A stretch of 64,000 nucleotides of DNA, from positions 39,184,001 to 39,248,000 of the forward strand of contig OZ241833.1 in assembly GCA_965202585.1 (NCBI GenBank). The letters run 5' to 3'. This DNA is from Thalia democratica (lineage: Eukaryota). The number at the start of each line of letters is the position of its first letter. Position 1 is the stretch's first letter. A program made the translations under genes and the position numbers. Below, in pieces: positions 28,159 to 59,345 of this stretch. The notes beneath the pieces were generated by a model. That model did not search any database and was not told the origin of the DNA. It saw only the letters and a list, made by a program, of their open reading frames with translations.

Positions 28159-31100
28159 ATGGATATACTTGGAGGCAGCATTGTGTTAAATAAAAGTTAG
28201 TATTATTTATGTATATTTTCTAAATTTAGATAAATAAAATTTTATCAAGTATTCTAAATTATTGTCTCTTCAATATAAAAGTATTTTTTTTATTATACTC
28301 TTTTTAATTAAATGACAGTTATTATAAAAACAATTTTTCTAAATTTTCAGATTTGAACCAAGCTGAACTGTTGATGACAGGCTTGAAACATATTATTCAA
28401 AAGCAAATCACAGAAAATCAAAATTTAGAAAACAAGAATTGCTGTTTAGAAATGGATAATAAAATTCTTGCTGATAAAAACACTGAATTGTTAAATGAAA
28501 ATAAGAAGTAAGTGAAAAAGTTTGAATTTTAACCACAATCAATGTTTCAAATAACTATTTTATTGTTATAACATTAGTACAAAATATTTTTAGTAAATAA
28601 ACATTGACAAAGATTATTTAAGATGTTTTATGGTATGAAACAATCCTAAATATTTTATATTGGTTCAGTTTAAAAACACAAAATTATCACAGTTTTGAAA
28701 TGGAGAATAAAAAAATGGCTGAAGCACAAGATAGATTAAAAAATAAAATTGAGGTGTTAAAAAAAGACCTCATTTTGAAAAATTCAGAGTGAGTATCAAT
28801 ATTTTTAAAGATTCTTAAATAGTTCAAGACTTTATCAAAATTAATTGCTTTTGTTATAGCTAAGTTTTAAAATTTATATTCAATAATTCAATAGTCAATG
28901 TAAAATATGCTATGTTAGTGAGAAGCAAAGTAGTATGGTCATAGTGTTTAAGATTAACATAAACTACCTGATATATATTTTTGTTTCATAAGTAATATTT
29001 TTGGAAGTACCTAAGATTTAGTATTAACTATTAATTAGTATTTAAAATATTGTCTAAGGTAGAAGTTTTTGCATTTTACCCCTCATGACATCATCACAGT
29101 GAAAAAATGTGATCAAAACTACTTATTTCTTGTTAAATAAATAAACTTTTATATAGAAGTATTGCTTGATTAGAAATTTATGCAATTTAAGTCAATCATC
29201 AAATTAAGTTTCTCTTTTTTTTAAATAATTTAATTTATCTAGATTACAAAATATCAAAAGATGTTTCTTTTTGGATCAATTTAGTGAAAAAGATGAAACA
29301 TCATACAATAATCAGAATGGTAAAAAAAGTTTTGAAATTTTCTTTTTTAATGTACACTTTGAAAATTTTTGATTTATGTAGATACCACAACAGATTCATC
29401 AGAAGCAATCTCTGAAAATGCATTGGTTAATGATTTGAATGAATTCAAAGGAGAACAAAAAGATTTTAGTGATAATATTGTGAATGTATCAAAGGGAAAT
29501 AAAGTAACACCAAATAATTCTCAGTTACCTCAATGTTTAGACAAAACTCCTGAGAACAGAGCTAGTAAGTTTGAAAGTTTTACTTAATTTATATGAAACT
29601 TTGTTTACACGTTTAAACTTTTAGAAGCTGAAAACTCAAGTTTTAACAACCACACTTCAAAAGCAAGTTATGTTGAATCAATGCAAATTGAATCAGATGA
29701 GTTATTGACCACTGATGAAAATTCAGGTGACAGCAGTTTAAGACAAGGTAAATTAATGGTTTCCAAAAAAAAAGTACAAGCTTGTTAGAAATAGTAAATT
29801 GTTTATAATGTTTTAAATGTTATAAGTTTTTTAAACAGTCACAATCAGCTTGTTAAGCTTTAAAATGGAAAATTTACTATATGTTCTATTGAAGTCTGCA
29901 TATTAAGTTTTTATGTTTTACTAAGATTATTTATAAAATTACCCTACAGGCATTGGAAAAACTAGAGTTAAGAATCGCATAAATAATAGAAGTTATTGTC
30001 AAAGTTCTGAAAAAAAATCATTACATATTGATATTAACTTAAATGCTAAAGGTAGATAGTTTAAGCAATTATTTATTTTTTAACTATACTGTTCATTTTT
30101 TGCTGTCATTTAGTGTAAATAAAATTAAAACAAAAGATTTTTTTTTCGTATAAAACCTTTCCATCATTTAAATTATGTTTTACCACTTACGACTTATATT
30201 ATCATGCAACAATTTCTATGGTATGTGTTTTTCATCTCAGTATTTTTAAAAGTATTATTTATTAACAGAAGAGAAAAATGTTTACTCAAAAAATCTAAAT
30301 CCAACTTCTAATGACGAAATTGGGCCTGAAAGTAATAAAAATTTAAACTTGTTTTTAGATGGTGAAATTTCAAATACTGTTGACAACAGCTCAACAGAAT
30401 TTGTTGACAAAGGTATTTATTTTTTTGTAACTTGATTAATTTTTTATTGTTGAATATACCAATGTATAAAAAAAAAAGTATAATATAATGATTTATTTGT
30501 AAGTAAATGTCTTTTTAGTTTTTTAATTCATCTTTTTATCAACTTGAATTGCATAATAATCAGTATTTTATTATAAAAGGGCAAGCTTGTTTTTAATTTT
30601 ATTTATTATTTTTATTTAATTTATAAGTTTTTACCTCTAATTTTATCTTTATATAATATTTTCAACATGAAACAACTTCTAACAAAGCCTACAAAAGAAA
30701 AATTTATAAAACAAATAAATTAATAGACAGACAAAAACAAGAGTGTTAATAACATTGTTTGTCAAACTATCATGCCTTATAAAAAAGCAAAAGCTTTTTC
30801 TAATATTCAGCACTAAAATAAGACTAACTATATCATTTGTAGGTGACATGTATTGTGGAAACGAAAAAAAGTTTGAATGCTCTGTATGTGATAAAAAGTT
30901 TGCCTCAAAAAAAACTTTATGTAATCATAAGAAGATACACGATAAAACTCATCAGTGTGAAGTTTGTCTGAAGTGTTTTGGAACCAAGTATCAACTTACT
31001 GTTCACATGAGAACTCACACGGGAGAAAAACCCTTCGTGTGTTCTACTTGTGATAAAAGATGCACTACAAAAAGTAATTTAAAAAGTCATCAGGCAACTC

Positions 31101-31168
31101 ACAGTGTTGAGAAAAAATTCAAGTACAAGGTTTGCCCAGATGACAGATATTTCAAAACTAAAGATTAA
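28159..31168 (+). CDS. C2H2 zinc-finger locus 2: coiled coil + acidic spacer + 3 intact fingers (414 aa, 9 exons)
   Basis: Exons 28159-28195, 28351-28507, 28693-28788, 29243-29319, 29382-29564, 29625-29747, 29950-30051, 30269-30412 and 30843-31168 join with GT-AG boundaries and consistent phase into a 1245-nt stop-free ORF; HTGEKP linker; degenerate fingers continue 31169-31430. Confidence 0.8.
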
Positions 31169-32400
31169 TCAAGTAGGCATATGAAGTTATTTTTATGTGA
31201 ACCAATGTTCTTGCACTAACTGTAAAAGAAGCTTCACACTTCATCAGGTTTTAATCAACATGTGAAACTTCATTACGATTATAAATATTCTTGCTGATAA
31301 TGCTAGAAGATATTTCACTGTTAATCTTACTGAAAGAAGACATGAACATTTTGAACCCAGTTACTCTTGTGCAAGTGTTGTAAAACGTTTTATACTTTAG
31401 CAAGTTTGAAAAGATATGAAGTTACTTATTAAAACCCAGTGGCCGTCACATATGAAACAATTAATTTTAAGGTTAAAAAAAATACTATATAAGTTTAATT
31501 TCAGTATAAACAATTAATGTAAACTTATTAATATTTTACAGCAGTAAATTTAAGTTTTTTATTAGTGAGTGGCATTCTTTTACCTTTAAAAATATTTTTT
31601 GTGTACCATTTAATATTTCATTGTTCTTTAATTAAATAAAAATTCATTTACCTTTTAAAGGGTTATCACACACCTAGGATAAAAAAATATTTTGAAATTT
31701 TGAAAATCTCAGGTATCTCATAGAACTCAGGAAAAACTAAAGAGTTATTTTTTTTTTGAACACGAATGACTCAGGATAGATATTTTTAACGTAGAAATAT
31801 AAAACTCTCTATAATTAAATTTGAAAAAAAAAATTAAAAACTATAAGTAGACAATTTGACCTTTAAATCAAATTATCTTCAACATGTACAAAAGCTATAT
31901 ACTATATTGTAGCTTTTTATGAACTGGTTGAAATTTTTAGTTTTCTTTTATTGATTAAAGTATTTTGCTTCACATAAAATAATACTTTCTTTAATGTATA
32001 AAAAAAAAAGTAAAATATTATTTTATCTTCAAGTACAATATTTTTTTATTTATGATAGCTCTAAATTAAACAATTTTCATTTTTATACTTTTTTTGCTTT
32101 ATTTAGATGCTATTTATAGTTGAAATCTTATATCAACTTTACCCGACACCTTTTAACTCTTCACTAGTTGATATATTACCAGATTCACACTAAAAATCTT
32201 TATATTTCAGCTTTAAAACCTTAATCAATTAACACAGAACATTTTTGTCAATGGAAGCAGTATATGCTTTATACAAATATCACATAACTAAATCTTTTAT
32301 AATAGTATTTCAAGACAGTATTTTTAATTTATCAGTTATCTATCTTATACAACTATATTTCAAAAGAGTATTGTTGATTAATCAGTTTCTTAATAGAAAA

Positions 32401-34385
32401 ATGGATATACTTGGAGGCAGCATTGTGTTAAATAAAAGTTAGTATCATTTATGTATATTTTTTAAATTTATATAAATATAATTTATTCAAGTATTTTAAA
32501 TTATTGTCTCTTCAATATAAAAGTCATTTTTTTATTATAATCTTTTTTATTAAATGACAGTTATTATAAAACATTTTTTTTTTAATTTTCAGATTTAAAC
32601 CAAGCTGAATTGTTGATGACAGGCTTGAAACATATCATTCAAAAGCAAATCACAGAAAATCAAATTTTAGAAAACTAGAATTGCTGTTTAGAAATGGATA
32701 ATAAAATTCTTGCTGATAAAACACTGAATTGTTAAATGAAAATAAGAAGTAAGTGAAAAGTTTATTTTGAATTTTAACCACAATCAATGTTTAAAATAAC
32801 TATTTTTTTTATAACATTAGTACAAAGTGTTTCAAGTAAATAAACATTGACAAAGATTATTTAAGATGTTTTGAGGTATGAAAAAATCATCAATATTTTA
32901 AATTGGTTCTGTTTAAAAACACAAAATTATCACAGTTTTGAAATGGAGAATAAAAAAATGGCTGAAGCACAAGATAAATTAAAAAATAAAATTGAGGTGT
33001 TAAAAAAAGACCTCATTTTGAAACATTCAGAGTGAGTATCAATGTTTCTAAAGATTCTTAAATAGTTAAAGACTTTATTAAAATTAATTGCTTTTGTTAT
33101 AGTTTAGTTTTAAAGTTTATTTTCAATAATTCAATAGTCAATGTAAAACATGCTATGTTAGTGAGAAGCAAAGTAGTATGGTCATAGTGTTTAAGACTAA
33201 CATAAACTACCTGTATATATTATTGTTTCATAAGTAATATTTATGGAAGTACCTAAGATTTAGTATTAACTATTAATTAGTATTGAAAACATTGTCTAAG
33301 GTAGTCGTTTTTGCATTTTACTCCTCATGACATCATCACAGTGAAAAAATGAGATCAAAACTAATTATTTCTTGTTAAATAAATAAACTTTTACGTTGAA
33401 GTATTGCTTGATTAGAAATTTATGCAATTTAAGTCAATCATCAAATTAAATTTCTCTTTTTTTTTATAATTTAATTTATCTAGATTACAAAATATCAAAA
33501 GATGTTTCTTTTTGGATCAACTTAGTGAAAAAGATGAAAAATCATACAATAATAAGAATGGTAAAATTAGTTTTGAAAAAAAAAATAATTAAATGTACAC
33601 TTTAAACATTTTTAATTTATGTAGATACCACAACAGAATTATCAGAAGAAATCTCTGAAGATGCATTGGCTAATGATTTGAATGAATTCAAAGGAGAACA
33701 AGAAGATTTTATTGATTATATTGTGAATGTATCAAAGGGAAATAAAGTAACACCAACAAATTCTCAGTTACCTCAATGTTTAGACAAAACTCCTAAAAAC
33801 AGAGCTAGTAAGTTTGAAAGTTTTTCTTAATTTGAATGCTCTGTATGTGATAAAAAGTTTGCCTTAAAACAAACTTTATGTAATCATAAGAAGGTACATG
33901 ATAAAACTCATCAGTGCGAAGTTTGTCTGAAGTGTTTTGGAACCAAGTATAAGCTTACTGTTCACATGAGAACTCACACGGGAGAAAAACCCTTCGTGTG
34001 TTCTACTTGTGATAAAAGATGCACTACAAAAAGTAATTTAAAAAGTCATCAGGCAACTCACAGTGTTGAGAAAAAATTCAAGTACAAAGTTTGCCCAGAT
34101 GACAGATGTTTCAAAATTAAAGATTAATCAAGTAGGCATATAAAGTTTTTTTTATGTGACCCAATATTCTTGCACTCACTGTGAAAAGAAGCTTCACACT
34201 TCATCAGGTTTTAATCAACATATGAATCTTCATTACGAACATAAATATTCTTGCTGATAATGCTAGAAGATATTTCACTATTAATCTTACTGAAAGAAGA
34301 CATGAACATTTTGAACCCAGTTACTCTTGTGCAAGTGTTGTAAGACATTTTATACTTTAGCAAGTTTGTAAAGACATGAAGTAAC
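32401..34385 (+). pseudogene. C2H2 zinc-finger locus 3: duplicated, deleted pseudogene copy of locus 2
   Basis: About 90% similar by eye to 27925-31430 (offset 4242 at the 5' end); TAG at 32676-32678, a 1-nt deletion in exon 2, and intron 5 fused directly to the finger exon at 33831-33833. Confidence 0.88.
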
Positions 34386-34934
34386 TAATTATAGAATTGC
34401 TAAATTATTTTTTCATTTTACTTGCTAAATGATAATAACTTAAAAAAAAAACAGAAAAAGTTTTTAATTTTACTTTTTTTAAATTGTGTTGAGTTAGTTT
34501 TGAATTTGTGAAAAGTCTATTGAATCATATTGGAAATTATTTAGTAATTATGGTTTCCTATGTAAACCATTATAAATTATGTAGTCTCTTGTTATTAATA
34601 AGAAATAAGAAATTATAACATCTATATTACTAAATTATGTTTATTTATATGTAAAAGCTTGTTTATGAGATTTATTTTAATTCAATTTTTGATTAAAAAA
34701 AATTAGTTTTGAACAAAAATCACTAAAAACCTGAAAACCCTTTATTTTTGAATAGATTTACATGTTAGATATTCTAACAATAATACAAAAATTTTTTACA
34801 CAAAACATTTTTTAAATTTTATTCTTACTCTTCTATTTCTTGATGTGAAATTATTCATTAAATAATTATTTCATTATCTAATTCATTTTAGATACATTTA
34901 CAGGAAACTTAATAATTATTATGTTATGATGAAA

Positions 34935-37900
34935 ATGGACAAAGTAGAAAAAAGCAAGGTGTTAAAAGAAAGTTAGTTTTATTTTTTAAAAATATTGAAC
35001 TTTTGTAAATTTATCAATATATACCTTTAACAATTGGTTTTATCTTATTTTTTAATAAAAATTTTTTAAAAACCATATATTTTTATTAACAAAACAAAAA
35101 AGTTAACCATTTAAAAAAAATTAAATCATAAACTTTTATATACTTAAAATTTATAGATTTATTACATGTCGTAAAAGAGTTCTTAAAATTAATGTTTATC
35201 CTGAAAGAAATTAATTCTTTTATTTACTTTTAGTTTACTTTTATAGATTCTAGTAAATTAGCTATAAATTTCTTAATGCTATACAATTGTGGTTTTTTTT
35301 ACTGGGTATGCCTCAAAGGCTAGTTGATTTGTTTTATTGCATATAAAGTTTAGTAATTTTTCAAATAAAAGCCAATGTTAGTTTCTGTAATAAAAAAAAA
35401 ATTGAACACCCCTACAGCCACAAATTATTTAAAATTAATTTTAGTATATATCAAACTAGAAGATGGAAACTCAAGTTTTAACAACCACACTTCGAATACA
35501 AGTGATGTCGAATCGATGCAAATTGAACCAGATCAGTTGTTTAACAATGAAGAAAATTCGAATAAGAGTCACAAAAATTCAAGACAAGGTGTGTTTAAAA
35601 GTTAAAATTAAAATTTTTACTTATTTGTAATAAAACGTTTTATACCTCTTAAATGCTCTATACTAGTTTTGTTACTTTTGAACATTTTGAATTAACTATT
35701 TTAGCTTTAAGGCAAAATTACTATATAAGCTCCAATAAAATTTGTTGTACATAAATAAACTTTTATGTTATGATAAATATTATACCATAAACTTTAATAA
35801 AATGATCACTCTACAGGGATTGAAAAAATCAGAGCTAACGTCCACGTAAATGATAGAAATGATTCTCAAAGTTCTGAGAAAAATCAATCAGATACTGGTA
35901 TAGACTTAAATGCTAAAGGTAAATAACTTAAATAGTATTCACTTCTAATTTTTTGATTTTTCTACCAAGTAAACAAAAAAAGTAAAAAAAGGAAATTTTA
36001 AACTTAACACGTTTGTAACACCTGTTTAGTCACAGAACAGCTTATTAATCAATTATTTCAACATTCAATAAGTTCTATGAAAACTAATTAAAGTATAAGT
36101 TTTAATTTTCAAATTGTTTTCATACTAAATGAATTAACAGATGATTACTCGAAAAATGGCAATCAAAACTCAAATGACAACAAATTGATAAAAACTGAAC
36201 ATGAAAGTACTGAAAATTTAAGCTTGCATTCTGATGGTGAAGTTCCAATTGCTATTGACAACAGAACAACAGAATCTGCTAAAAAAAGTAATTATTCATT
36301 ATTATTTACTTGGTTGTTCACTCATTAATTAATTTATAAGTTTTAGAAATAATTTATGGAGTTTAGAAGTTGAGGTATTTTAAAATAAATTTGAGAATTT
36401 TTGTTAGTAAATGTTTTTTTTGCTTTATATGCCTTATGTTTTATTTTTCATAAGATAGTGTTTTTTTTTTCTGTCATTAAATTAAAAAAAAAAAGCTTAT
36501 ATAAAAAATGTTATTATTCATCACAATTAGATTTCTCCCGAATGATATAAATATGTATATATTATTTACTTCTCTGTTACTTTTACTTCTTAACATGTTT
36601 TTGTCTATTTAGTACATATTTGTCAAAGAAAAAAAATAACAAATCTACAAAACCAAATTATGATAGATTGTATAACATACTTACTGAATATCAACTAATT
36701 TATTTTGGTGAGTTATATTTTTTTATAAATCAAGGTTTATAAAAAGATATAAATGAGTTCACAATTTAAACACCTATATAGATGTATTGTATAAAAACAA
36801 TTGGCAGCTATTTTAGATAAATATTTAAAATATAATTTTCATATTAGTTAAAAATTTTTGAAAAGGTGAAAATCTTAGGAATCATTTTAAAGTAATTAAT
36901 GAAGCTTAACTAATTGGCTGCAATTAGGCAAAAAGTCATTGAAACTTTATGCTTCACTAAATAGTTTCGCTGCTTACTATAAATAATAATTAACTATAAA
37001 AAAAAAGTATATTTTTAATTATTATTAGAAAAATCTAATTTAGTTTTAAAACAGTAAAAACAATAAAATAAAAATTCGAAGTAATTAACTTTTGCACCTA
37101 AATAAATAGATTAACATTTTTGTTTATATTTTTGTTTAAAAATAACATTGTTTTTTCTACTCATATCTGATTTTATTTGTTAATATTTGTACCAGTTTAT
37201 TAAAATTTTTTGTTCTATATTTTTTCATCCTTGAGTCATTTGGTACTTTCTAATCCTTCATAGGCTCGTTTTGATTTCGTAAAATATGTTTTTTTGTGCT
37301 TTGTTTAGACGTTTTGACTACTAAATTTATTTTTTAATACATATTCTTTCACTTTTTCGTTAAAAGATAATTTATTAAAAGTTGCAATGTATATTAAACA
37401 GTTGTAAGTTCAGAACGAAAAGTTTCTTAAAGTGATTAAGTTTTTTTTTGTTTACAACCACTGACATTAAATGTCTGAATTTTTCAATGAATATAATTAA
37501 AAATTTGTACATTATAGCAACTAATCCAAAAAACTTTTTACAAAATATCATATAGTTCTTATACCTAATAAGTTGCTAATATAACTTGAAGTTACATGTA
37601 ATTTGTAGTAATTTAATTAAAACTGATAGTTTCGCTTTTAATGTTAAAAACTGAAGTTAAGGAAATTACAAACTTTAAACAATATATGGATTCATCGAAA
37701 TAAATCTGTAGTTATAGATGTTAATAATTTTATTAATATTTGTTTATAAGGTTGGACATTATAGAATTACTTCATATATTAACAAAATTTTATAATTAAT
37801 TTTTACAGTTTAGTATACAGTTAGCTAATGTTTTATAATTTTTTTTGTTGTACACTGCCCTAAGTAAAGTGAAGTAATTTGTATTTAGTTTAAGTTTTAT

Positions 37901-39774
37901 ATACATACAAAAAATTATTATGTTTAAGAAATGTTAAGTTTTATATTTTATAATCTTATATTTCAAAAACATAAACAACGACTACTTAAAAAGACTATTT
38001 TTAATAATAAAATTTTCTGCACAAGTTGTAATAATCTTAAGATCAAATATTTTTATTCACACAATTTATGTTTTAGTTAATTAACAGATAATTCAAGTGA
38101 ACAAAGTTCTGCTGATTTAGATGAAGATTTTGTACCTGATTCTTTGCATTCAGATCAATCTTCTAGCTCTAAAAGTAAAAGTTAGTTGTTTTTAATAGTA
38201 ATATTGGTAGATTACCCTTGTTTTTCTTAAAAATCCTTAAAACTAATAATGTTTTGTATAAAAGTGTTGTAAATTAAATACATGCTTTTATTGAAACAAT
38301 TTTTAAACTATATATGCATATGTAGTGAGTAATACTTTTAAAACATTGAATAAAAAGCAAGTTTGCAAAACTGAATAAAGATATTTTTTTTAGTTACTTC
38401 ATGATTTTAATTTTGAACGAGTTAATGTTTTAAATATGAGTAAAAAAAACTTATATGTAACATTTTATTTAATAAATACTAAGTTGGGTTAATTTAATGG
38501 TTGTTTATTTGTTTTGGCGAACATATAACTTATATTTTTATTTTATATGAATGGCTAAAAAGTATCAAATAGTAAGTGTATATTTGAAAATGTTTACTTT
38601 AAGTTTTGTTATTAACTTTCTAAACAGTTTATATGAAAAGTTAATACAATTTAATCTCTTAAGTAAATTTGATTATATTGATGCTGTTAGTTTTTTGTTA
38701 TAAACAATTAGTTTTTTATAAGTTTTTTTGTTGTGCTATTAAATAGTTACTCCTTATTTAGTATAAATATTTTATTTTTTAAATTTTAATGTAATAAGAT
38801 AAAAGTGTTCAAGTTTAAAAAATGACAAAACAACAAAGTCTGTTTAAATTTCGTACATGCTTTTCGACTGATATACATTAGAAAAATACAAAGAGTATTG
38901 ACTTATATCTCACATTTTTTGGTATAAAACAAAAACTGGTTCACACGTTTTTCGTATTTAAAACTCAATTTATTAAGTGTTCCAAAATAAACCAATGTTT
39001 TTGTCAAAAAATTTTGATCTGCTTTGCTTTTAAATATCAACTGAATATTAAACAAAACACCACATAATCTACTTATTTACAGTGATTTTGATTTATTGTT
39101 GAACTTGTTAGAGACGTTTATGAATATAGCTTATAGGTAATCATTAATATCAAAATATACGTTAGAAACTGTTTATTTTTTATTTAACAATAAGTTAAGT
39201 TTTTATGTAGTAATACTATTATATGTATATTTATTTACTTTCAGATGGTAGTTCGGCGCTCAAGAAAAATGAAAAACAATACAATTGCTCTGTTTGTAAG
39301 AAGAAATTTTCTAGTAGAAAAACTTTTTACCGCCACAAAAATGTTCACAATAAAAGCCATCAGTGTGAAGTTTGCTTGAAATATTTTGGAAGCAAAGTTC
39401 TTCTAAGTAAGCATATGAGAACTCACACTGGAGAAAAACCCTACGTATGTTCTACTTGCGATAAAAGATTTGCTCGAAAAGATGCTTTACAAAACCATCA
39501 GGCAACTCACATCTATGAGAGAAAAATCAAGTGCAAGATATGCCCGGATGACAGATATTTCAAGACTAAAAGCCAACTGAGCAGTCATATGCGTTTCCAC
39601 TATGAACCAAAACATTGTTGTATACGTTGTAATAAGAAGTTTCATACTTCGTCACATTTGAACGAACACATGAAATATCATTTTGAACCGACTTACGCTT
39701 GTGCAAAATGTGGTAGGAAATTTCACACATTAGCTAATTTGAAAAGACATGAAAAAAGAAAAACAGGATGTTAG
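34935..39774 (+). CDS. C2H2 zinc-finger locus 4: acidic spacer + 6 fingers (last one C2HC-like), 345 aa, 6 exons
   Basis: Exons 34935-34971 (MDKVEKSKVLKE; an in-frame ATG also at 34926), 35460-35588, 35817-35918, 36141-36287, 38088-38180 and 39245-39774; all phase-1 GT-AG junctions, 1038 nt without internal stop. Confidence 0.82.
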
Positions 39775-41024
39775 TGGCAATTTGGTTTAACTTGTTTTCA
39801 ACAACTTTATTTTGAACTCAGTTATATTAGATAATTGAAAGCTTATTTTTACTTATGAAGTATGTACAGAAAACTTCATTTTTTCAAGCAAATATTTAAT
39901 TGTATTAAAACTTTCATAAAAAAGTTTTTATAAGCGTAAAACTGTTTTACTTGTGCGATTTTAGGTGTTCTAAAATAAAAATTACTCAATTTTTCAATTA
40001 AACGACTTAAAGTATAAAATAATCTAGTTTTTCAATATAACTAATATTTTTTTTAGTTTGTGGTTTTTTTAATAACACTATAATATGTTTATATTATTTT
40101 GAAAACTACTTTGTTGGTTTTTTTGCTTTCTCTAAATATAACGTGATTTTGTAATTAGCAAAATTTCAAACAACTGCAGTTTGTTCTAGAGGACGTTGAA
40201 AATAATTAGTAAATTTGTTTTTTACGACTCTGCTATATCGCTTATCCCCACTAATAATAGATTAAATTTATATCAAAAAGTAGTTGTGTAACACAGTATA
40301 AGCAAATTATATAAGTTTTATTCAAGTCTTTTCTTTTAATTTGTTTGTATTTTGAATAAAGACTTTAAGAATGTTAAACTAAGCAATCTTGAATTATTTA
40401 AATATTAATTAGCTTTTATAATTTGACTTTTAGGATTTCCAAATTTTTTTTTAATGCGTTTAAAACAAGTTAACAGTTTTTGTTACTGTAACTTTATTGT
40501 TGATAAACTTGTTCTTTCTATCAAAGTTTTTGCCTATTTTGTATTTAATAATATCTATTTAATTTTTACTTTTAAAAGTGTCATTTTAACTAAGAAAAAT
40601 AAATATTTTATGAACAACTTTAAGTTTTGATCCTTTTTATCAAGTCTGAAAATGATGATTTTTACAATAGAAAAATAATATTAATGTATTTTCTTATGTG
40701 ATGAGTTTTAAAGTTTTCTTATTAATCTACTATTAGCTAGATTAAGAAAATAAATAGTTATTTTATTCTTTAAATTAAAATAATATTAGAGGTGCTAACT
40801 TTTTAAACCAGGTTTGAAAAAAATAATATATTTATCCTTTGTTCTAATATCTGATCAACCACATATGTTTCATCGACTTCTTTTATCTTTTAATGAAATT
40901 GTTTACTAAGTCAGAATTATTTGCTGTTTTTTTATTCCTTTATATATGCAAAAATATGTAATCAATCTTTATTATTTCATTTAAATTAATAGGTAATAGT
41001 AAAATGTTGTAATGTTAATAAATA

Positions 41025-41150
41025 TTATAGTTTATTGAACGACAAAAAATAAGACGCTCAAATTTTTTGGTCTTAGGACCTGGTGCACAAAAAGCCTTTC
41101 GGTTATCGAGTTGCACACCACAGGTACCTTTTAACGTCTTGTCCATTTTA
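41025..41150 (+). repeat. Dispersed ~120-bp repeat with AGGACCTGGTGCACA core (copy 1)
   Basis: Similar copies at 44735-44855 (+) and 46995-47095 (-). Confidence 0.7.
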
Positions 41151-44306: not shown

Positions 44307-44734
44307 ACACAGAAACATATATCGGTATAATAAGCAAGGACTGTATAATTTGTTTTTATTATATATTCCAGTGAACTTGTATTAATAGGATCTTTTATTA
44401 CCAAACACTTAAATTTATATTTTGAATAGCTAATTTAATATAACATACTTAAGCACTGTGTAAATTAAAAAGTAAAACTACAAATATATTAAACAAGACA
44501 GAATTTTTTTTGGTGATTTATTAGCTAATTTTGTAGATACTTAATAATTAAAAGCTACTAAAAACCTTAACAATTTTTTTTTGTTTATATATTAGTAAAA
44601 CAGACTATTAAGATATTAACAAACAATGAAAAATATTTTGAAAAATGCAACTTAGTGCAATTAAATACAAGTAAACGACTAAAAATAAATTAATTTAACT
44701 TTTGCTTTTTTGATTTAAACTTCATTTAAAACAG

Positions 44735-44855
44735 TTATAGTTTATTAAACAACAAAGAAATAGACGATCAAAATACTTGGTACTAGGACCTGGTGCACAA
44801 AGAATCTTATGGTTATTGAGACATACACCGTAGATACCTTATAATGTATTGTTCA
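44735..44855 (+). repeat. Dispersed AGGACCTGGTGCACA repeat (copy 2)
   Basis: Aligns by eye with 41025-41150. Confidence 0.7.
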
Positions 44856-46479
44856 GGAAAATTACATAACTTTTACTACAAGCTTCTGAGTAAACAAACG
44901 TAAGTCATTAAGCAATTTTGTTGGCTCATGAAAAAAGATGACAAATAGTAATTTTAGTGGATATTTATCTTTTGTGTTTTAAAACGGAAGTTAAAAATAT
45001 ACCAGAAACTGTGTAACTGTGACTATATGTAATTAATTTTAATACTGACCATACTAGTTATCAGCAAAGATACTTTAGAAAATTAAAAAAAAAGATTAAT
45101 ATTGCACCAGTCATATTTGTTTTATTCTCAACAGTTTCGTTACAAGAAGAAGACATAAAATATAATATTACAAACTATGTCTAATTGGACAACTTGACAC
45201 TTAATATGCATATATTTAAAACAACTAAATTTCAAAACAGAATTCTTTATGGGAGTTGTTATATATATATATATATATCTTTTGAATAATAGTTTAACTC
45301 CTAACTACCTAAATAAACACAAAAAAGTTCTTAAATGTACTGATTATAGTTCTTATATTTACTACTAGTTAAAATAACAAGATAAAAGTTTTATGTTTAC
45401 AGAAATTTGTTTAAAATTTTACATGGCTTATACGGTTTCACTTTTGCAAGAGCAGTCAATTTTGCTTTTTAAATTGACCACTTGTGCAAAACTGACTCCG
45501 ACCCTCCTTTTACGTATACCTCGTTAAAATTAAAGCTATAAATATTACTACTTGAATTTTTATTTCCTTTTTATAAAATAACTTTTAACGACGATAGAAG
45601 TTTCGAATCTTGAATTTCAAAACTATACTGAAAAGAAAATTTGGTTGCTTGTAAAGCTAATAGAACTAATTGATTTTTTTAAAATTTTATAGTTAATGAG
45701 TAAACCTTAAGCTATTTTATACTTATTTTAAAATCTATTGCAAATGTTTAACATTTGAAAATTGTATAACTAAAAATTTATTGTTTGTTTTATATAATAT
45801 TAGTATCAAAAGAGTTATTCTTAAGTAACCTTATTTACTAAAAATACTTGAAAGTTATTATTTCATTTTAATGTATATTTATTATATGCTGTAAGTAAAA
45901 TAACAGAAGTTATAAACATTTTTTATATGGTTTAAATAAATATAGTAATCTAAAAAACACATAAGTTATGTCTTAGTTAAACTAGCTTAAAGTTATTTTC
46001 AGTATATTTTTTAACTTATCCTAATAAGAAGAGTCCAGATAATAATTTATTATATTTTCGTGTCGACAACTGGGTTTTTTATTTTGCTGTATTCAAAGCC
46101 TTCTTAACAATTTTTTCAACAATAGGCAACTTTTTTTAAGTTTAGGTCTTTCTTATAACTTTCTTAAATACTTAACTAGCCTGAGTGTGTCACATCTAAT
46201 TTCTCTTCTTAGTTCAAACTAAAATGAGTAAATTAAAGTTTGAAATGCTTTTTATTCTTCATGAATGTGTACTCCTTTGGTTTAACAAATTTTAAGATTA
46301 TTTATAAAATTGTAGTTTTTTTCTTCAAAGTTTAACACTTCTGTGCAGTTTAAAACGATATTTAACATAATAAAAATTAGTTATTAATATTGGTTGTAAC
46401 TCTCTTGTTTTCATTGTTTCATTATTCTAGCTTAAAGTTTGCAGTGCATAGTAACTTAAACTTGTTCTGTTAAAGGGCT

Positions 46480-46860
46480 AATTAAATGGCGGAGTCTAGA
46501 TCTGTTCGCAAGTTTTTATGGAATATTACATTTACTTTATTTCATTTAAATTTTTTATTTCTCATTAATGCGCAGAATTTTACATAAAATGCAAAAATGT
46601 TTTCCAGCAAAACGGTCCTACTCTAAATTGAGGTCAACTTTAAATGCAACAGTAAAGCAATTAAAATATATCAAGTAGGAGTATATAAAAAGATAAAATT
46701 ATAAAATAATTTTAGCAACTGTCATTGTCAAAATTCTTTTTCTCAAAGAGCAAAGACTATGTGGAACAAATTACAACAGGATGTAGTATTGTGTGAGAAG
46801 GTGGAACTTTTTCGCTTAAAAGTAAACACATATAATTTAAATAGTCTAAATAGCAGTAAA
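46480..46860 (+). mobile_element. 3' fragment of a CR1/L2-type LINE ORF2
   Basis: WRSLDLFASFYGILH and SNCHCQNSFSQRAKTMWNKLQQDVVLCEKVELFRLKV resemble the CR1 C-terminal consensus (RRxxxDLxxxYKIL...FFSxRVVxxWNxLPxxVVxxxSxxxFKxxL). Confidence 0.7.
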
Positions 46861-46994
46861 AATCAGAAAATTTTCTCTAAAACAATACAGAAAAGCAAAT
46901 GATTCTATAATTGTATTATATTTATCTGATCTAAATTAGCTACCGATTTCTTCATTTTGCTATTTGTAATAAGTCCTGGAGATGACTTTAAACT

Positions 46995-47095
46995 GCTCTT
47001 GTGTATGACTCAAAAATGAAAAGACTTTTTTGTGCACCAGGTCCTTAGACAAAACTTTTTTAGCGTTTTTTGTCGTTCAATAAACAATATATAGA
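46995..47095 (-). repeat. Dispersed AGGACCTGGTGCACA repeat (copy 3, inverted)
   Basis: TGTGCACCAGGTCCT core plus GTCGTTCAATAAAC, the reverse complement of copy 1. Confidence 0.7.
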
Positions 47096-47824
47096 TTATT
47101 TTTGTTTCCCTATGCCTCCCCCTGACAGAATATTAATCAAATTTTATTATTTTTGTAGAAATAATTTTGTAAATGTTAAGTAATCTACTTTTATATCAAT
47201 CACATAAGTTTAAGGCTGTTAATTTTTTATAAGTTTGACTATGTTTGATGATTTATTTATGTTTATTTTTTGTTGTTTATATATGTTTTTATTTTCATTT
47301 TTCTCATTGTGTTTCCTGCTAAAGTGGCTCAGGTTTTGATGCCATAGTCCAACACTGCACAACAAACAATTTAATGATAATAATAAAATCAGTTTTTTTC
47401 ATTTGTTTTATTAGGCGGACCAGCTTTTTTAATGCTTCACCGTGATAGATAAATAAACAACCAATTAGCCTACAAAATGAAAACATTACTTGTAATCAAA
47501 AATAGTTTCCGTTTTGATCTGTTCGCTACTTAAAAAATACTAAATTTAGTTTTAAGAGTTTTAAAACAAAATAGCTTTGTGATGCTTTAATAACTTTGTT
47601 GCTTTTGAGTACCTGTAATTGAAAAAAAAAACTTTTAACTTCTTTTGCTTTATTTTTAACCTAAACTTTTATTTTTTAATAAATTTCACAATCTAACAAA
47701 CTTTGAAATACACTTTTACTTGAAAAAAAGCAATATAAACTTTTCTACATATAAATTTAAAAAAAGGCTTTTTCAAGTGTTCAAAAAAAAGTTATATTTT
47801 TTCAAATAGATAAAGAAAGTTTAT

Positions 47825-49567
47825 TCAAAGTCTACTTAAACTAAAAACAACTAGATAAGCGGGAATCAAGCCTATCATTGGCCGAACTGTTGTTATTTCG
47901 CTATTTTCGAAACAGCACCCTCTGGTGTCAGAGTTGGGAGAAGTTTCAGCGCTTTTACCTTCGCTCGCAAGAAACACGAACGACATCTTTCTGACTTGTC
48001 CGTTGGTGACGCAGTGGCTGGTCCCTTTCATGAGTTCGAAATACAACCTGGTGGACACGTCACAGTCGCAGTCTTCGAAGCAGCATTCGCACTGTTTCAC
48101 GATATCCTCGGGGCTCGCCGGGTAGCCTCTTGCCAGAACGTCTGACACCTCGTTCGCCTTGACTCCGTGCATATAGAGGAAACCGTCGCGCATCTTTTCA
48201 ACCTCACTCTCATCGACTGGGTTGATCCTGTATATTTGCAGAACTGTCGGGTTACTGTTCAGATTTCCCTCAATCATTGACCCGAGCACAAACTGGTAAT
48301 CTCGATTTGAAGTTTGCAACAGCTCTGCTTTGTACTTGATGCTAGCGTTTATTTCAGTGATGCTGCTCATTTCAAACAACAATTGCTGCATGAACGAGTT
48401 TACTTTGCATTCAAATTGATGTTTTGCAAGTTCAATTTCTGCGCGCTGATTTACGATTATTTCTTCTTCAAGCTTGGTAACAAAACTGTTAGTAGAGTAG
48501 TCTTCAGCAGAACTGTTTTCAATCACAGTGCCTTTTTGCGGTTCTGAAACTGAAGGGTCTTTTGAAAACTTGGTCTCGCGGAGTTCGCCGTATAAAATAT
48601 GCTTCACAAGCTCGCGTGCGCTTTGCTTTATTTCGATTTCTATCATGTAAGCGAGAGTAACTAGGTCATGGTGAGCCACGGCTATTCTTTTTTCGTCATC
48701 AACCACTTGAAACGTGCCAGAAAGAATTTTATTTCCATCGCTGTCAAGTTTACGATTCAAAGATTGTTTGAATCGAATTTGTTTTTCATAAAAAGGATTT
48801 CCGTCAAAAACCTTTAAAACGGGCTCATAACTAAACCTGGAATCGTGACACTGAAACGACGTTTTTACAAACGGAGTCGAAGGAATCTTCTTTACAAATA
48901 ATGGTCGGCAAGTTTTAACAAACTTCCCTTCCTTACATTCTCTACAAATACCACTTGAACTTGTTAGCGTCTCTTTCACTTTGTTAACAAACAAGTACGT
49001 TACTTGTTTAGCGGTCCCTTCGTCTTCAACATAGCATTGGCCGTAACGATGAGCAATTTCAAAGCTATTAGTCAAATATATTCCGGGACCAAATCTGCCG
49101 GACGACGAAGGCATCAGTCCATCTTTCAAAATTCCCTCAACGTTGCACTCTTTGGTGCCGTGCAGAAGCAGCAAGCCCGGACAACTGCAACGTTCCACAT
49201 TTGATTTGACCCTGTAAATTCTGAGAGAAATGTTTTTATTCGAGTAGTTTTTCAACTGCAACACTTTTGTTTCAGTGATCAGACCGAGTGCTCCTTTCAA
49301 AAGATCGTAATCGGGATCGTCGTTTTTCAACAGCTGAAGCTCGTGCTTTGAATCCGAAAGAGGTTTTTTGAAAGCCGAAGTATCGTGTTCAAATAGTTTA
49401 ACTGCTCGTTTTACCAAATTTTCTCTCCTTGCTTTAAATTTTTTTTCCATATTTTTAATTTTAATGTTTGTTCTCTGTTTTTCTTTTTCGCATAATTGGC
49501 GCAAAAAGTTCTGAGGACCAGGAAACTGTGTTAGTAGCTGGTTTAAGTGTTCTTCATTTGAGTACAT
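47825..49567 (-). CDS. 580-aa protein with two tandem PARP-like (ADP-ribosyltransferase) domains; single coding exon
   Basis: Domain 1: LRIYRV...LLLHGTKECNVEGILKDGL...GRFGPGIYLTNSFEIAHRY...DSDGNKILSG...IAVAHHDLVTLAYMIE, colinear with the PARP1-type catalytic fold. Domain 2: LQIYRI...FLYMHGVKANEVSDVLARGY...SEITTV...IPAYLVVF. AATAAA overlaps the TGA. Confidence 0.88.
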   Translation of the reverse strand: MYSNEEHLNQLLTQFPGPQNFLRQLCEKEKQRTNIKIKNMEKKFKARRENLVKRAVKLFEHDTSAFKKPLSDSKHELQLLKNDDPDYDLLKGALGLITETKVLQLKNYSNKNISLRIYRVKSNVERCSCPGLLLLHGTKECNVEGILKDGLMPSSSGRFGPGIYLTNSFEIAHRYGQCYVEDEGTAKQVTYLFVNKVKETLTSSSGICRECKEGKFVKTCRPLFVKKIPSTPFVKTSFQCHDSRFSYEPVLKVFDGNPFYEKQIRFKQSLNRKLDSDGNKILSGTFQVVDDEKRIAVAHHDLVTLAYMIEIEIKQSARELVKHILYGELRETKFSKDPSVSEPQKGTVIENSSAEDYSTNSFVTKLEEEIIVNQRAEIELAKHQFECKVNSFMQQLLFEMSSITEINASIKYKAELLQTSNRDYQFVLGSMIEGNLNSNPTVLQIYRINPVDESEVEKMRDGFLYMHGVKANEVSDVLARGYPASPEDIVKQCECCFEDCDCDVSTRLYFELMKGTSHCVTNGQVRKMSFVFLASEGKSAETSPNSDTRGCCFENSEITTVRPMIGLIPAYLVVFSLSRL

Positions 49568-49586
49568 GATGTATTTATTTTATTAT

Positions 49587-50131
49587 CTGTAAAAGTAAGT
49601 ATTAAAGGAACAAGTCTTTAGTTTTAGTTGTGATAAAAAAGGTAAACTATTCTAAAGTATTCATATTAATTTAAACGAAATATAAATACTTGTCTCAAAT
49701 GTTACTTAAATAAATCTAAACCCCTGTAAATAATTTTGAATCTAGAAAAATTGTATATAATTTTTTTTTGAATCTTTACATTTAAATATATTTATTTTAC
49801 CGATGAAAATTGTTCGTTTTACTAATGTTAGTAAATAGTTAACGAACAGACAGTGTTTTTTATAAATACTAAAATTACTGTTTTTTTATTTATAGTAGGC
49901 AGTCTGCTATTTCAGTTTTAGTATGTTTTCTATTTAACATTTTTTGACTGTTGAGTCTGTTAACGAAAAGTGATAGTATTAATGTTAAAAATTTCCTAAA
50001 AATTTACTAATGAAATTTTTAAATAATAATAAAATAATGACACTTTTTAAAATCATAAATAAATTTTGACTATTTTTATAAAATAGATTATAAAACATTA
50101 ACCTTTTTACACCAAGACTTGTTGTACTTAC
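49587..50131 (-). other. Putative 5'-UTR intron of the double-PARP gene
   Basis: Minus-strand donor AAG|GTAAGT at 50132/50131 and acceptor TTACTTTTACAG at 49587; the 19 nt between acceptor and ATG contain in-frame TAA TAA, so the ATG at 49567 is the start. Confidence 0.5.
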
Positions 50132-55562: not shown

Positions 55563-55616
55563 GCTGTTAGAGGACGCCAATATTGTATACCATATTTATT
55601 TAAACGTAATTTAAAG
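55563..55616 (-). other. Isolated 36-bp LTR-B 3' end followed by a PBS-like TGGCGTCC
   Basis: 55581-55616 matches 52998-53033 at 35/36; it is followed on the minus strand by T-TGGCGTCCTC (TGG-initiated, typical PBS position; cognate tRNA not established). Confidence 0.65.
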
Positions 55617-58600
55617 GGATAAGTTGTTCAGTTTCTGATTCATTTTGTAGGTCTAGTTCTTCGTCCGAATCGCGGTGTTCTAAGTATTGGACCATTTTAT
55701 TGTTCGTTACGACGTTTTTACAATTGTCATCGTATTCTTGAGTTTCTTCGTTGAAAGCAACAAGTATTGGGCGACTTAATAAATCAGCTGTTTTGTTTTG
55801 ATCGCCTGGAATATACTCCATTTTTGGAGCATATTCTTTAATAATGGCTATGTACTTTTCTTCTTTTGGAGAGTGATCTCCGGTAGCGTTGTTAATAGCA
55901 TCTACCAAGGCTCGGTGGTCTGTTTTTACTCGAAGTTGCCTTCCAATAATTCTAATTTTAAAATGCTTTATACTAAGGTATAAAGCTGTCAGTTCACGGA
56001 AAAATACCGATCTTACTGATTGAAGTACTGGTAATTTTTTTGAAAAGAATGCAAGAGGTTTAAGATTTCCTAGTTCGTCCTCTTGTTCAAGCACTGCCCC
56101 AATATGCGTAGAAGAGGCGTCTGTAGAAAGAATCAGCTCTTTTTTTGGATTTTCTTAGGAGAGATGAGTAGCTGAGACAAGGGTTTGAATTGCTTTTTCA
56201 AAAGCTTCTTGATGTTCTGTCTTCCATTTTAATCGTTTTCTTGAATTTTTCGGTTCTCCTTTGGTAAGTTCATATAACGGTTGAATTTTCTCGGCCAAAT
56301 TCGAAGCAAATTTATTGTAGTAGTTTAAACAACCAAGGAAAGATCGCAATTGTTTTATTGTTTGTGGTGGTTGAAAGTTTTCGATTGCCTTAACTTTACT
56401 TTTCTGCATAAAAAAACCTTTGCTGCTCAACATGTGTCCTAGATATTGAACTTCTTCAGCTGCGAATTTGCACTTTTCGCGGTTGATACGTAGGCCAAAT
56501 TCGTTTAACCTAAACAACACTGTAAACAAATGTTTCATATGTTCTTCAACTGTTTTTGAGTAGATTAAAATGTCGTCTATATATGTGAAACTAAATTCAT
56601 GGCACGGGGCCATTATATCGTCCATAAGTCTTTGAAAGGCCATAGGGGCATTCTTAAGGCCAAATGTTCTTAATGGCAGAAACGTGCCATATTGCGAAAT
56701 CATGGCCGCTACTTTTTTTGCCCGGTCGGTCAAAGGGAGGTTGAGATATGCCTCTTTCAGGTCGAGTGTGGAAAATACTTTTGAGTCGATTGGAATAATG
56801 GCCGAAAGGTCATCGATATTTGGCAGAGGATAGCTCAATATCTTGGTGTATTGGTTGATATGTTGGTAGTCTACACATACTCTTGGTTCCCCGTTCTTTT
56901 TTCTAACCACGGTTAGTGGGGATACTATGTCGGAGTTGCCTCTTATGACTGCTCCTTGTTTAAGTAGTTTGTTAAAATTGTTTTCAATCTCTTTAGAAAC
57001 AACATTGTTTGTTTTTCTAGCTTTTTGATGTCGTGGTAAAAATCCTTTTTCAAGGTCTATGTCTAGTTCGTGGTTGTGTTTAGGTTTTTCGTTGTAGTTT
57101 GGTTCTTTCTCAATTTCGGGAAATAATGTCAGAAGTTTTTCTATATCATCTAATGTTTTTGATTTACGTGGCAGATTTGTTAAATGTTTTAATTTAAGTT
57201 TAATTCCAGTTTTTGTCTGCGCGATGATTTTTTCTTGAGGTATAATTGTCAAGTTGCGATTTATAATGAAATCTAACCCGAGAATTGCAAACGGGTTGTT
57301 TGAGTCAATTACGTAGAAAAAATGAGGTGAATCTGGTTTTAAGCCAATGTTAACATTTAACATTACGTGGCCTAGCACTTTCGTTTTGTTTCCATTTATT
57401 TCAGAGATGAAAGGTGCTGATTTATCTTCTTTATATGAGTTAACCATATTTTTTGATATTATAGAGACTTCTGCACCAGTATCAAATAAATATGGTATAT
57501 TCGTATGATTGTCCGTTAAGACTAAGAGTTCTGTTTTGCTGTTTGGTTTTGTTTCGTATAAGACTTTATTATCAAGAAATTTGTCTAATACTATTTTTGG
57601 TTCTTGTATATTTTGTGTATCGTTTTGATCAATAGTAGCACATGATTCTTCTAATTCTTTTGTGCTATTTATTGATTTTTCTTCTATTTTATCAATTTTA
57701 TTTACGCCTTCTTCCTGTATTCTTGTCATATTTACTACCGATGATTTTTGTTTAAGATACTCTAATTTATTTTCTAAAAATTTTTGATACATATCACATT
57801 GCGGCCCTTCGCAGTTGTAGGCTTTTTCACCAAAACGCATATGATGGTAACATCTATTAGAGTTTTTATTATTGAACTGGTTTTGATTTTCTCTGTAGTC
57901 TTGTGAGAAATTGCCTTTGCTTTTATAGTTGTTGTTCGTGTTATTTTGTGCAAAGTTCTGTCTAAAGTTTCGGTTTTGTTTTTGATCAAGTGTGTTGTGC
58001 AATTTATTGTTGAAATTATATTGATTGGTGGAATTTTTTGCATTGTAGTTTGTTTTTAATTCAGCCGGGCCTTGTTCAAGAGTCCACATCACTCTTGACT
58101 TGAACTTATGAATAGGTAATTCCAGATCCTTTCTTAGTATTTCCTTTGCCCATTTTGGGCTGTAACTAAGAGTTAGATGTTTATAGAGGTCGTCTTGTGA
58201 ACAAGTAAGACCTTTTGTCACTAGTTGATGGATATCTTTAAATGTTGGGGTACGACTCCAAACGGGAGGTGATTTGTGTATATTAGGTAAACATGGTGTC
58301 ATGCTTAAAATTTCCTGTTTAAAACAAGTGTAACTCGATGGTTTGCCAGCTTTTACATATGAGAGTACGTCATTTATTGGCCAAATTCCAATAATGATTT
58401 CAAATTGCGCATGGTCGTCAAAAATTCCTTGACTTTTACATTGGATCTCAAAAAGATCGAACTCAGCCATGGGCCTTTCGCCTGTTATTTTTCTAAACGC
58501 TCGTTCTTGAAATTTGTTTGATAGTCTTGAATTTGTTGGTTGATGGAAGGTACGATGATCAGTCGGAAGACTTTGGTTGTCAATGTGGTTGCCGTTGGGT

Positions 58601-59345
58601 AGATATTTGTTGTTTTTATTATAAGTTTGGTCTAGCTTTTTTTGTAAAATGTTCATTTCTCTTTGTAAACTTTTTATTGTAGTACCATCTTCACAGTCTA
58701 CGTCTATGCTTTGGTCACTTGACTGTGTGTGATTTGCAAGGCGAATTGGGTTTTTTTAATAGAACAGGATTTTGCTACAGAATTAGATGAAAGAGTATTT
58801 GAGTGTATTAGCGGGGCAGGGAGTGCGGACATTGTTTCACTTGTCGTTGGGGGAATAGTGTGTAATCTTCTCGTGTTTGGGTAACCTTGAAGGTTGTCGC
58901 CGAACATCGCTTCATCTGTTGTAGCTGAATGTGATCTTCTAGGATCTGTTGAATTTATTTGTGAGTTATAATTACAAATTGTGCTTACCTCGGCTCTTGC
59001 AGGGGGGTTGAGTGATTGATTATTCTGTAAAGAAATTGCATTTATAATAGTATTAAATTTATTTTCTACTAATTTAGTTAACTCATTTATTCTTTTTGTA
59101 TTGTCTTCGATGGTTGGTTTGCTGTTCTTCACCGGGACGCCATTAATGCTCCCGGTGTTACCGGCGTCCCCAGATTCCTCTGAAGCCAACCCTGTAACAG
59201 GTTCAGCAGCCTCAACAGGAGCTAGATTCGCGGTAGTTCCGGGGCATTCTTCTGAAGTATTCTCGGTTTGCGATAGTACTTCGGTCCTGGATCGCGTTCT
59301 TGGGGGTTTAAGAACCTTTTTTAAGGTTTTTTCAATAGAGGACAT
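55600..59345 (-). pseudogene. gag-protease-RT-RNase H polyprotein with one frameshift and one in-frame stop; no integrase
   Basis: Gag knuckle RCYHHMRFGEKAYNCEGPQC; protease YLFDTGAEVSII; RT SPLTVVRKKNG..RVCVDY, LDLKEAY, FGLKNAP, YIDD; RNase H TDAS, RELTAL, TDHRAL, ADLLSR. TAA at 56155-56157 is in frame on both sides; -1 offset at the A7 run (58751-58757). Confidence 0.92.

Follow-up and report, generated by a model that had tools for sequence, protein, structure and literature searches.

A PARP-type protein of Thalia democratica with tandem ADP-ribosyltransferase domains, one of them degenerate

Members of the PARP (ARTD) superfamily are usually studied as modular enzymes with a single ADP-ribosyltransferase (ART) domain, and dead ARTs, including those of ZAP, PARP9, and TASOR, are known as stand-alone regulators. 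A tandem duplication of the ART domain occurs in the actin-ADP-ribosylating binary toxins iota Ia, C2I, and VIP2, secreted bacterial proteins of the R-S-E branch in which one copy, the N-terminal one, is inactive. For the 17 human PARPs, whose domains were re-annotated in 2023 (PMC10450202), no tandem ART architecture surfaces in the excerpted text, and the only result of full-text literature searches for a double or tandem PARP arrangement was a second PARP-like domain predicted in TASOR. Here, we describe a gene located in a 64,000-nucleotide stretch of DNA from Thalia democratica (contig OZ241833.1, positions 39,184,001 to 39,248,000; the whole stretch is hereafter called the window, and positions are counted from its first letter). 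The gene encodes a protein of 580 residues that comprises two homologous units, each with a PARP-type ART domain behind a long helix. The gene is best explained as a functional host gene and not as a mobile element, its relatives forming a multi-copy subfamily within the PARP (ARTD) superfamily that is restricted to one lineage. It is reasonably likely that in this lineage-specific protein the first ART domain (D1) binds nicotinamide adenine dinucleotide (NAD+) and acts as a mono-ADP-ribosyltransferase (mono-ART), and that the second (D2), a conserved ART fold, is non-catalytic and serves D1.

Duplicated units and their ART domains

The coding sequence, taken from the list of open reading frames (ORFs), is complete and lies in a single exon at 47825-49567 of the minus strand, exactly where an earlier note on this DNA had placed it, with an ATG start and a TGA stop included in these coordinates. 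Its GC content is 41% versus 23% across the 64-kb window, which stays near this value over its entire length, and tblastn of the protein across the window found one copy. The internal duplication is established by the match between the family profiles of D1 and D2 (hhalign; probability 99.5%, E 1.1e-22, 209 columns); in BLASTP, the N- and C-terminal halves matched each other with E 7e-5 at 23% identity over 228 amino acids, and both comparisons place the two-unit repeat described in the earlier note beyond chance. The columns shared by the two profiles comprise the helix, the first strand (KYKxE.L...D.DY), the His strand, the central strands, the D-S-x-G loop, and the terminal PAYL strand. The motifs that the earlier note had listed are all found where it put them, namely DPDY/NRDY, L.IYR, GPGIY, HRY, CRECK, a Cys-rich 10-mer at residues 493-502, and PAYLVV/LAYMIE. 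Helix 1, which precedes D1 in the first unit, lies at residues 19-57 (49397-49513, minus strand, as for all features of the gene given below); it is defined by the secondary structure of the AlphaFold2 (AF2) model and is aligned by hhalign with helix 2 of the second unit, observed in the AF2 models at residues 359-396 (48380-48493). The two units are joined by a linker at residues 316-355 (48503-48622), which is little conserved and partly (335-353) of low predicted local distance difference test (pLDDT) score.

D1 occupies residues ~74-315 (48623-49348) and is supported by its Pfam match, by its profile against the PDB, and by conservation counts. Residues 132-197 match the Pfam PARP family PF00644 with 31.9 bits at a curated cut-off of 26.7. 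Furthermore, a profile of 31 D1 sequences searched against the PDB retrieved PARP3 (E 4.8e-7), followed by PARP15, PARP1, PARP14, and PARP4; in these matches, LLLHGT of the family is aligned to the PARP His-Gly and GxGVY to the PARP Gly-x-Gly-x-Tyr, and the His and Tyr residues of PARP3 and PARP15 pair with His136 and Tyr164. In the relative P0005, whose insert is short, the Pfam PARP match spans profile positions 18-195 of 199, so that D1 is a complete ART domain, interrupted in the window protein by a variable insert; phmmer with residues 60-320 of P0005 gave spurious matches only. The insert (residues 199-248, 48824-48973) carries CRECK, is absent from D2 in the hhalign comparison, and has a pLDDT of ~25-40 in the full-length AF2 model, in which low-confidence stretches continue to about residue 294. 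The CxxC insert singled out as a feature in the earlier note falls into this variable, nearly neutral, low-confidence stretch. The landmarks of D1 are His136-Gly-Thr, Gly-Pro-Gly-Ile-Tyr164, Ala172, Tyr175, Asp275, Arg294, His299-His300, and Tyr307. Counted over about 60-100 relatives, the donor-site residues are strongly conserved (His136 93%, Gly137 96%, Thr138 96%, Gly160 and Gly162 94-98%, Tyr164 100%), as are further sites (Ala172 96%, Tyr175 85% with Phe in another 8%, Asp275 91%, His299 90%, Pro at 305 87%, Tyr307 97%). The view of D1 as a PARP catalytic domain that keeps the His and both Tyr residues is thus borne out by a Pfam score above the cut-off and by conservation throughout the family, and the HG(T/V) motifs lie where they had been reported, with His136 at 49160-49162 and its counterpart His467 in D2 at 48167-48169.

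D2 occupies residues 406-580 (47828-48352) and has no Pfam match; its profile against the PDB gave a marginal match to PARP3 (E 0.06), on the same PARP3 residues as D1. Its fold was obtained by modeling it alone with AF2 from a 42-sequence alignment (pLDDT 91.5, predicted template modeling score 0.87). In a Foldseek search of this model against the PDB, the top matches were PARP ART domains only, with PARP4 (5.8e-8) followed by PARP3, PARP1, PARP14, and PARP12. VIA-align superposed it on the whole ART domains of PARP14, PARP1, PARP3, and PARP10 with Z scores of 12-12.7 (12.7 being reached within the set PARP14, PARP1, and PARP3, and about 12.5 holding for PARP1, PARP3, PARP4, and PARP14); 372 chains had Z of at least 8, and the matches listed were PARPs only. 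Model residues 55-229 lie on residues 1613-1801 of PARP14, 772-1010 of PARP1, and 319-532 of PARP3. Against the Swiss-Prot models, human PARP3 was the best match (E 2e-7), with ZAP, PARP12, PARP16, and PARP11 among the matches listed, and the best structural matches of the full-length model, which is of lower confidence, again fell on residues 398-580. The C-terminal half therefore shares the PARP ART fold and does not adopt an unrelated one.

The NAD+ site of D2 is lost from this fold. The His column holds His in 28 of 73 sequences, Asn in 13, Tyr in 8, Gln in 7, and others in the remainder; the second Tyr column is variable; and where the Gly-x-Gly-x-Tyr loop would lie there is a Cys-rich loop at residues 493-502 (48062-48091), the correspondence of which to the donor-site loop, already proposed from the sequence, is given by the hhalign columns. 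The earlier description of D2 as keeping the His and losing both Tyr residues thus holds for the latter and fails for the His as a feature of the family. Other positions are retained: conservation is 92% or more at Asp423, Gly468, Gly481, Asp547, Pro569, Tyr571, and Leu572 and 78% at Arg549, and the DSRG and PAYL(I/V)VF motifs are conserved, with DSRG and PAYL above 90%. D2 is hence a conserved pseudo-ART, with the ART fold kept under selection and the NAD+-site residues lost. Cys residues at columns 493, 500, 502, and 519 are present in 44-74% of members, a pattern that may reflect a zinc site in some of them. The suggestion that D2 may keep a catalytic Glu is not upheld, the proposed residue lying in a stretch without a conserved column (acidic in 10-19%), and the idea that D2 contributes complementary catalytic residues loses its support for the same reason.

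Substitution rates differ along the protein. Relative to P0001 (synonymous divergence, dS, of 0.32), the ratio of non-synonymous to synonymous substitution rates (dN/dS) is 0.53 for the whole protein, 0.30 for the D1 core, 0.89 for the D1 insert, and 0.60 for D2; relative to P0002 (dS 0.69), the corresponding values are 0.32, 0.27, 0.66, and 0.30. Overall, the ratio ranges over 0.22-0.30 in the D1 core, 0.30-0.60 in D2, and 0.4-0.9 in the insert. These rates indicate that both halves are under purifying selection, with D1 the most constrained, and that the protein as a whole is fast-evolving. Variants among paralogous contigs (4 synonymous, 14 non-synonymous) were not used as evidence of positive selection because they are too few and were chosen by support.

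Donor site of D1 and alternative functions

The final strands of D1 in the AF2 model (residues 293-299 and 303-313) end in Pro-Ala-Tyr-Leu-Ile, the counterpart of the P-x-Y-L-I with which PARP domains end, and hhalign places PAYLIE of D1 on PAYLVV of D2. In the structural alignments, residue 580, the last of D2, falls on residue 1010 of PARP1, which sets Tyr571 on Tyr1001. The catalytic Glu988 of PARP1 is taken here to precede Tyr1001 of this motif by 13 residues; counting 13 residues back from Tyr307 leads to Arg294, the residue that the earlier note had also put at this position, and the assignment agrees with the strand spacing and with the secondary structure of the model. In the family, column 294 is occupied by Lys in 37, Asn in 12, Arg in 8, and Ile in 5 of 79 sequences and by Glu in none, and the three columns preceding it are acidic in 22-46% of sequences. 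The catalytic Glu of the poly(ADP-ribose)-forming PARPs (PARP1/2 and the tankyrases) is therefore missing at this position. D1 would accordingly be read as an H-Y-(K/R/N) domain, which is very unlikely to make poly(ADP-ribose); to our knowledge, Lys, Arg, or Asn at the Glu988 position occurs in no triad of the human PARPs (H-Y-E, H-Y-I/L/Y, Q-Y-T, Y-Y-V). Transfer is still possible with a Lys at this position, since the E988K mutant of PARP1 retains mono/oligo-ADP-ribosyl transferase activity (PMC5137445). The subfamily arose by duplication of a long helix plus ART unit within one chain. In the proposed mechanism, D1 would bind NAD+ via His-Gly, Gly-x-Gly-x-Tyr, and the second Tyr and, with Lys, Arg, or Asn at the Glu988 position, would transfer single ADP-ribose units, like PARP1 E988K, and form no polymers; and D2, having lost its NAD+ site, would most probably serve D1 as a non-catalytic partner in regulation, in recognition of a target or ligand, or in oligomerization or assembly.

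Several points weigh against this reading. The full-length AF2 model is only moderately confident in D1, and a profile of D1 residues 180-316 found no match in the PDB at E <= 10; because of this absence of a sequence match for the C-terminal half of D1 and of the moderate model, the Glu988 assignment rests on spacing and predicted strands. The Ser904 position, presumably eight residues after Tyr164, is occupied by the near-invariant Ala172, which would provide one nicotinamide contact fewer and could weaken NAD+ binding. The D1 His is missing in some relatives (for example, P0005 has Gln), and dN/dS of 0.3-0.5 is high for an enzyme. Furthermore, the run search found no RNA run holding the gene; the runs that hold it, returned as being of unknown kind, are DNA, since intergenic DNA is also covered in them.

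Among the alternatives, the one that survives best, although we consider it fairly unlikely, is that both domains are dead and that the protein binds nucleotide, ADP-ribose, RNA, or protein in the manner of ZAP/PARP13 or TASOR. The lack of Glu at the assigned Glu988 position, the near-invariant Ala172 where PARPs have the nicotinamide-binding Ser (a position again set by spacing), the Pfam score of D1 barely above threshold, and the relatively fast evolution of the protein all agree with this alternative, and pseudo-PARPs are well documented (10.1101/2020.03.09.974832; PMC11377751). However, His-Gly-Thr, Gly-x-Gly-x-Tyr, and the second Tyr of D1 are 85-100% conserved among sequences of ~30% identity, whereas the equivalent positions of D2 have decayed, which is the pattern expected from selection for NAD+ binding in D1, and PARP1 with a Lys at the Glu988 position can still act as a mono-ART (PMC5137445).

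It is less probable still that D1 works as an NAD+ glycohydrolase or that its substrate is something other than protein, such as nucleic-acid ends or a small molecule. The His-Gly-Thr region is weakly similar to RNA 2'-phosphotransferase (Tpt1/KptA), ART-PolyVal, and DUF3990, and the basic residue at the Glu988 position and the conserved His299-His300 pair, for which we know of no counterpart in canonical PARPs, would fit such a function. Those similarities, however, have E values of 0.005-1.7 versus 5e-7 for PARP, and the structural neighbors are all protein-modifying PARPs. A mono-ART D1 accompanied by a non-catalytic D2 is the reading adopted in the following.

Relatives, gene structure, and surroundings

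The five relatives retrieved by a word-indexed search all stem from ENA marine or TARA assemblies, and a second such search with the 31-sequence alignment returned only these five proteins again. An exhaustive profile search of 1.84 billion representatives at 50% identity found 484 sequences at E <= 1e-3 and 84 at E <= 1e-30; about thirty are full-length two-unit relatives of 520-690 amino acids. The members of twenty clusters looked up were all from ENA, JGI/IMG, or Logan metagenome assemblies, and none of these clusters held an NCBI or UniRef member or a named protein. The contigs of the relatives are AT-rich (flank GC 0.21-0.27), are nearly without other genes, and have dispersed repeats in common with the window. 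Two very different family members occur in one TARA sample, and the family is therefore multi-copy within genomes of one AT-rich marine lineage. In the DNA runs that hold the locus, the summed contig depth over the ORF, which is not a copy count, is 3-10x that of the flanks, mostly from contigs 90-95% identical, in agreement with several close paralogues. The contig of P0001 is collinear with the window over 5.6 kb (44462-50115) at ~80% nucleotide identity through the non-coding flanks and keeps the ORF intact. Another relative, P0003 (contig L009:1640-1719), is 73% identical over D1, and its reading frame is broken by a premature stop behind residue 330, where the linker starts. Recognizable family sequence follows the stop, and this copy is a pseudogene or else is naturally truncated to D1 alone.

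Upstream of the coding region, the block ACTTAyTTTTACAG (49587-49600) combines a branch-point-like site, a pyrimidine run, and an AG located 19 nucleotides upstream of the ATG; it is identical in the window and in three homologous contigs, and the sequence farther upstream diverges among the four homologous loci. The block is a probable 3' splice or trans-splice acceptor of the 5' untranslated region. The metagenome gene call of P0002 (L008:3001-3048) has a 16-residue N-terminal extension upstream of the conserved acceptor block and the conserved ATG, which is probably an artefact of prokaryotic gene calling. At the other end, an AATAAA polyadenylation signal, read from the sequence, overlaps the stop codon (47820-47825).

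A transposon or virus cargo or a decaying retrocopy is very improbable, and the cargo interpretation was rejected: the intronless coding region, the multi-copy state in DNA runs (ORF depth 3-10x that of the flanks), a long terminal repeat (LTR) retroelement 3.4 kb away, very high-copy repeats adjoining the gene, and the premature stop of P0003 could be cited in its favor, but the ORF is not flanked by terminal inverted repeats or long direct repeats, no companion ORFs are found at this locus or on contigs of up to 21 kb, the collinear 5.6-kb contig at 80% identity keeps the ORF intact at dN/dS 0.53, the splice acceptor is conserved, and a poly(A) signal is present.

Returning to a mono-ART protein encoded by a host gene, an immune role or one against transposable elements is speculation; it would agree with the expansion in copy number, the broken copies, the fast evolution of the protein, and the example set by the antiviral PARPs of vertebrates, which evolve rapidly (PMC4038475). 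More specifically, and doubtful at present, the family may form a fast-diversifying set of innate-immune or genome-defense effectors in this marine lineage, in which D2, as an intramolecular sensor or decoy, would gate the mono-ART activity of D1 upon binding ADP-ribose, a nucleotide signal, or a factor from a pathogen.

The LTR retroelement lies at 55600-59345 of the minus strand, where ORFs of 833, 164, and 213 amino acids encode an aspartyl protease, reverse transcriptase, and RNase H; no integrase was found among the window ORFs of at least 110 amino acids. On the plus strand, several ORFs of 115-183 amino acids at 26334-39774 encode C2H2 zinc fingers (Pfam zf-C2H2, E 1e-15 to 1e-24) and are exons of a cluster of zinc-finger genes that lies upstream of the PARP-like gene. 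With a GC content of about 23%, these ORFs and the retroelement fit a large eukaryotic, probably animal, genome. A short way downstream of the PARP-like gene, the segments 46920-47103 and 47288-47471 reach summed depths of ~118,000 and 62,000 in the DNA runs, versus ~500 nearby; contig loose ends are abundant at 47026-47093, an inverted partial copy of the repeat lies at 44759-44804, and related copies occur at ~41016-41145 and on TARA contigs. The two segments look like a very abundant short interspersed repeat, and tRNA and Rfam scans of the high-copy repeats beside the ORF were empty.

Comparison with known PARPs and other ART systems

The nearest proteins in sequence and structure are PARP3, PARP4, and PARP1, together with PARP14 and PARP15. 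The protein belongs with the PARP/ARTD superfamily by the PF00644 score of D1, the superposition of D2 on the ART fold, and the donor-site His and Tyr residues of D1, which D2 does not share; the ART fold is present in both halves, and D1 has in common with PARPs the His-Gly, the Gly-x-Gly-x-Tyr, the second Tyr, and the terminal P-x-Y-L-I strand. It differs from them in carrying two ART domains per chain, in the large variable insert of D1, and in having Lys, Arg, or Asn at the assigned Glu988 position and Ala at the assigned Ser904 position. In a shape search, the helix before each ART aligns with part of the regulatory helical region (PARP_reg) of PARP1-3 models, matched by helix 2; however, only one long helix precedes each ART here, instead of the multi-helix regulatory helical domain (HD) of the PARP1-4 clade, and PF02877 (PARP_reg/HD) gave no match at E <= 10. 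Because the HD and the Glu are both absent, the protein is placed outside the PARP1-4 clade. Pfam at E <= 10 also gave no WGR, BRCT, WWE, macro, or zinc-finger module, as the earlier note had stated. Its remark that the architecture is unfamiliar among known animal PARPs stands as well: no described PARP with a tandem layout was found, and no named protein is among the relatives. Beside the family, two unrelated metagenome proteins, P0130 (672 amino acids) and P0132 (571 amino acids), contain short PARP-type domains in tandem, three in the former and four in the latter; Pfam PARP matches them in 3-4 stretches with 96 and 125 bits, and ART-PolyVal and Exotoxin-A appear as secondary matches. Multi-ART arrays thus occur in other architectures too, unless the gene caller fused neighboring minimal ART genes.

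D2 resembles ZAP/PARP13, PARP9, and TASOR in keeping the ART fold under selection and in having lost the NAD+-binding His and Tyr, and the ZAP domain is among its structural matches. Unlike in these proteins, the dead domain is fused behind a probably competent paralogous domain and is accompanied by no RNA-binding or chromatin modules; no sequence relationship to them beyond the general PARP fold was found. With iota Ia, C2I, and VIP2, the protein shares an internal ART duplication in which one copy would be catalytic and the other, as in the toxins, a non-catalytic adaptor. In contrast to the toxins, it belongs to the H-Y branch, is eukaryotic, lacks a signal peptide, and has its inactive copy at the C-terminus; no R-S-E active-site family appeared in its Pfam and PDB results, all matches being PARPs of the H-Y type. 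Since the toxins belong to the R-S-E branch, the likeness is convergent. D1 further resembles PARP1 E988K, in which a Lys stands at the catalytic Glu position and the His and Tyr are intact; however, E988K is an artificial mutant of a DNA-dependent polymerase, whereas here the basic residue, at a position set by spacing, is natural and family-wide.

Were D2 to gate D1 as a sensor or decoy, the protein would be a self-contained switch of enzyme plus pseudoenzyme, an arrangement that was not found described for any PARP. The D1-D2 fusion, kept under selection across dozens of divergent paralogues, would offer a natural system for studying the effect of a pseudo-ART on an active ART, and a basic residue at the assigned Glu988 position could be the natural state of a whole family.

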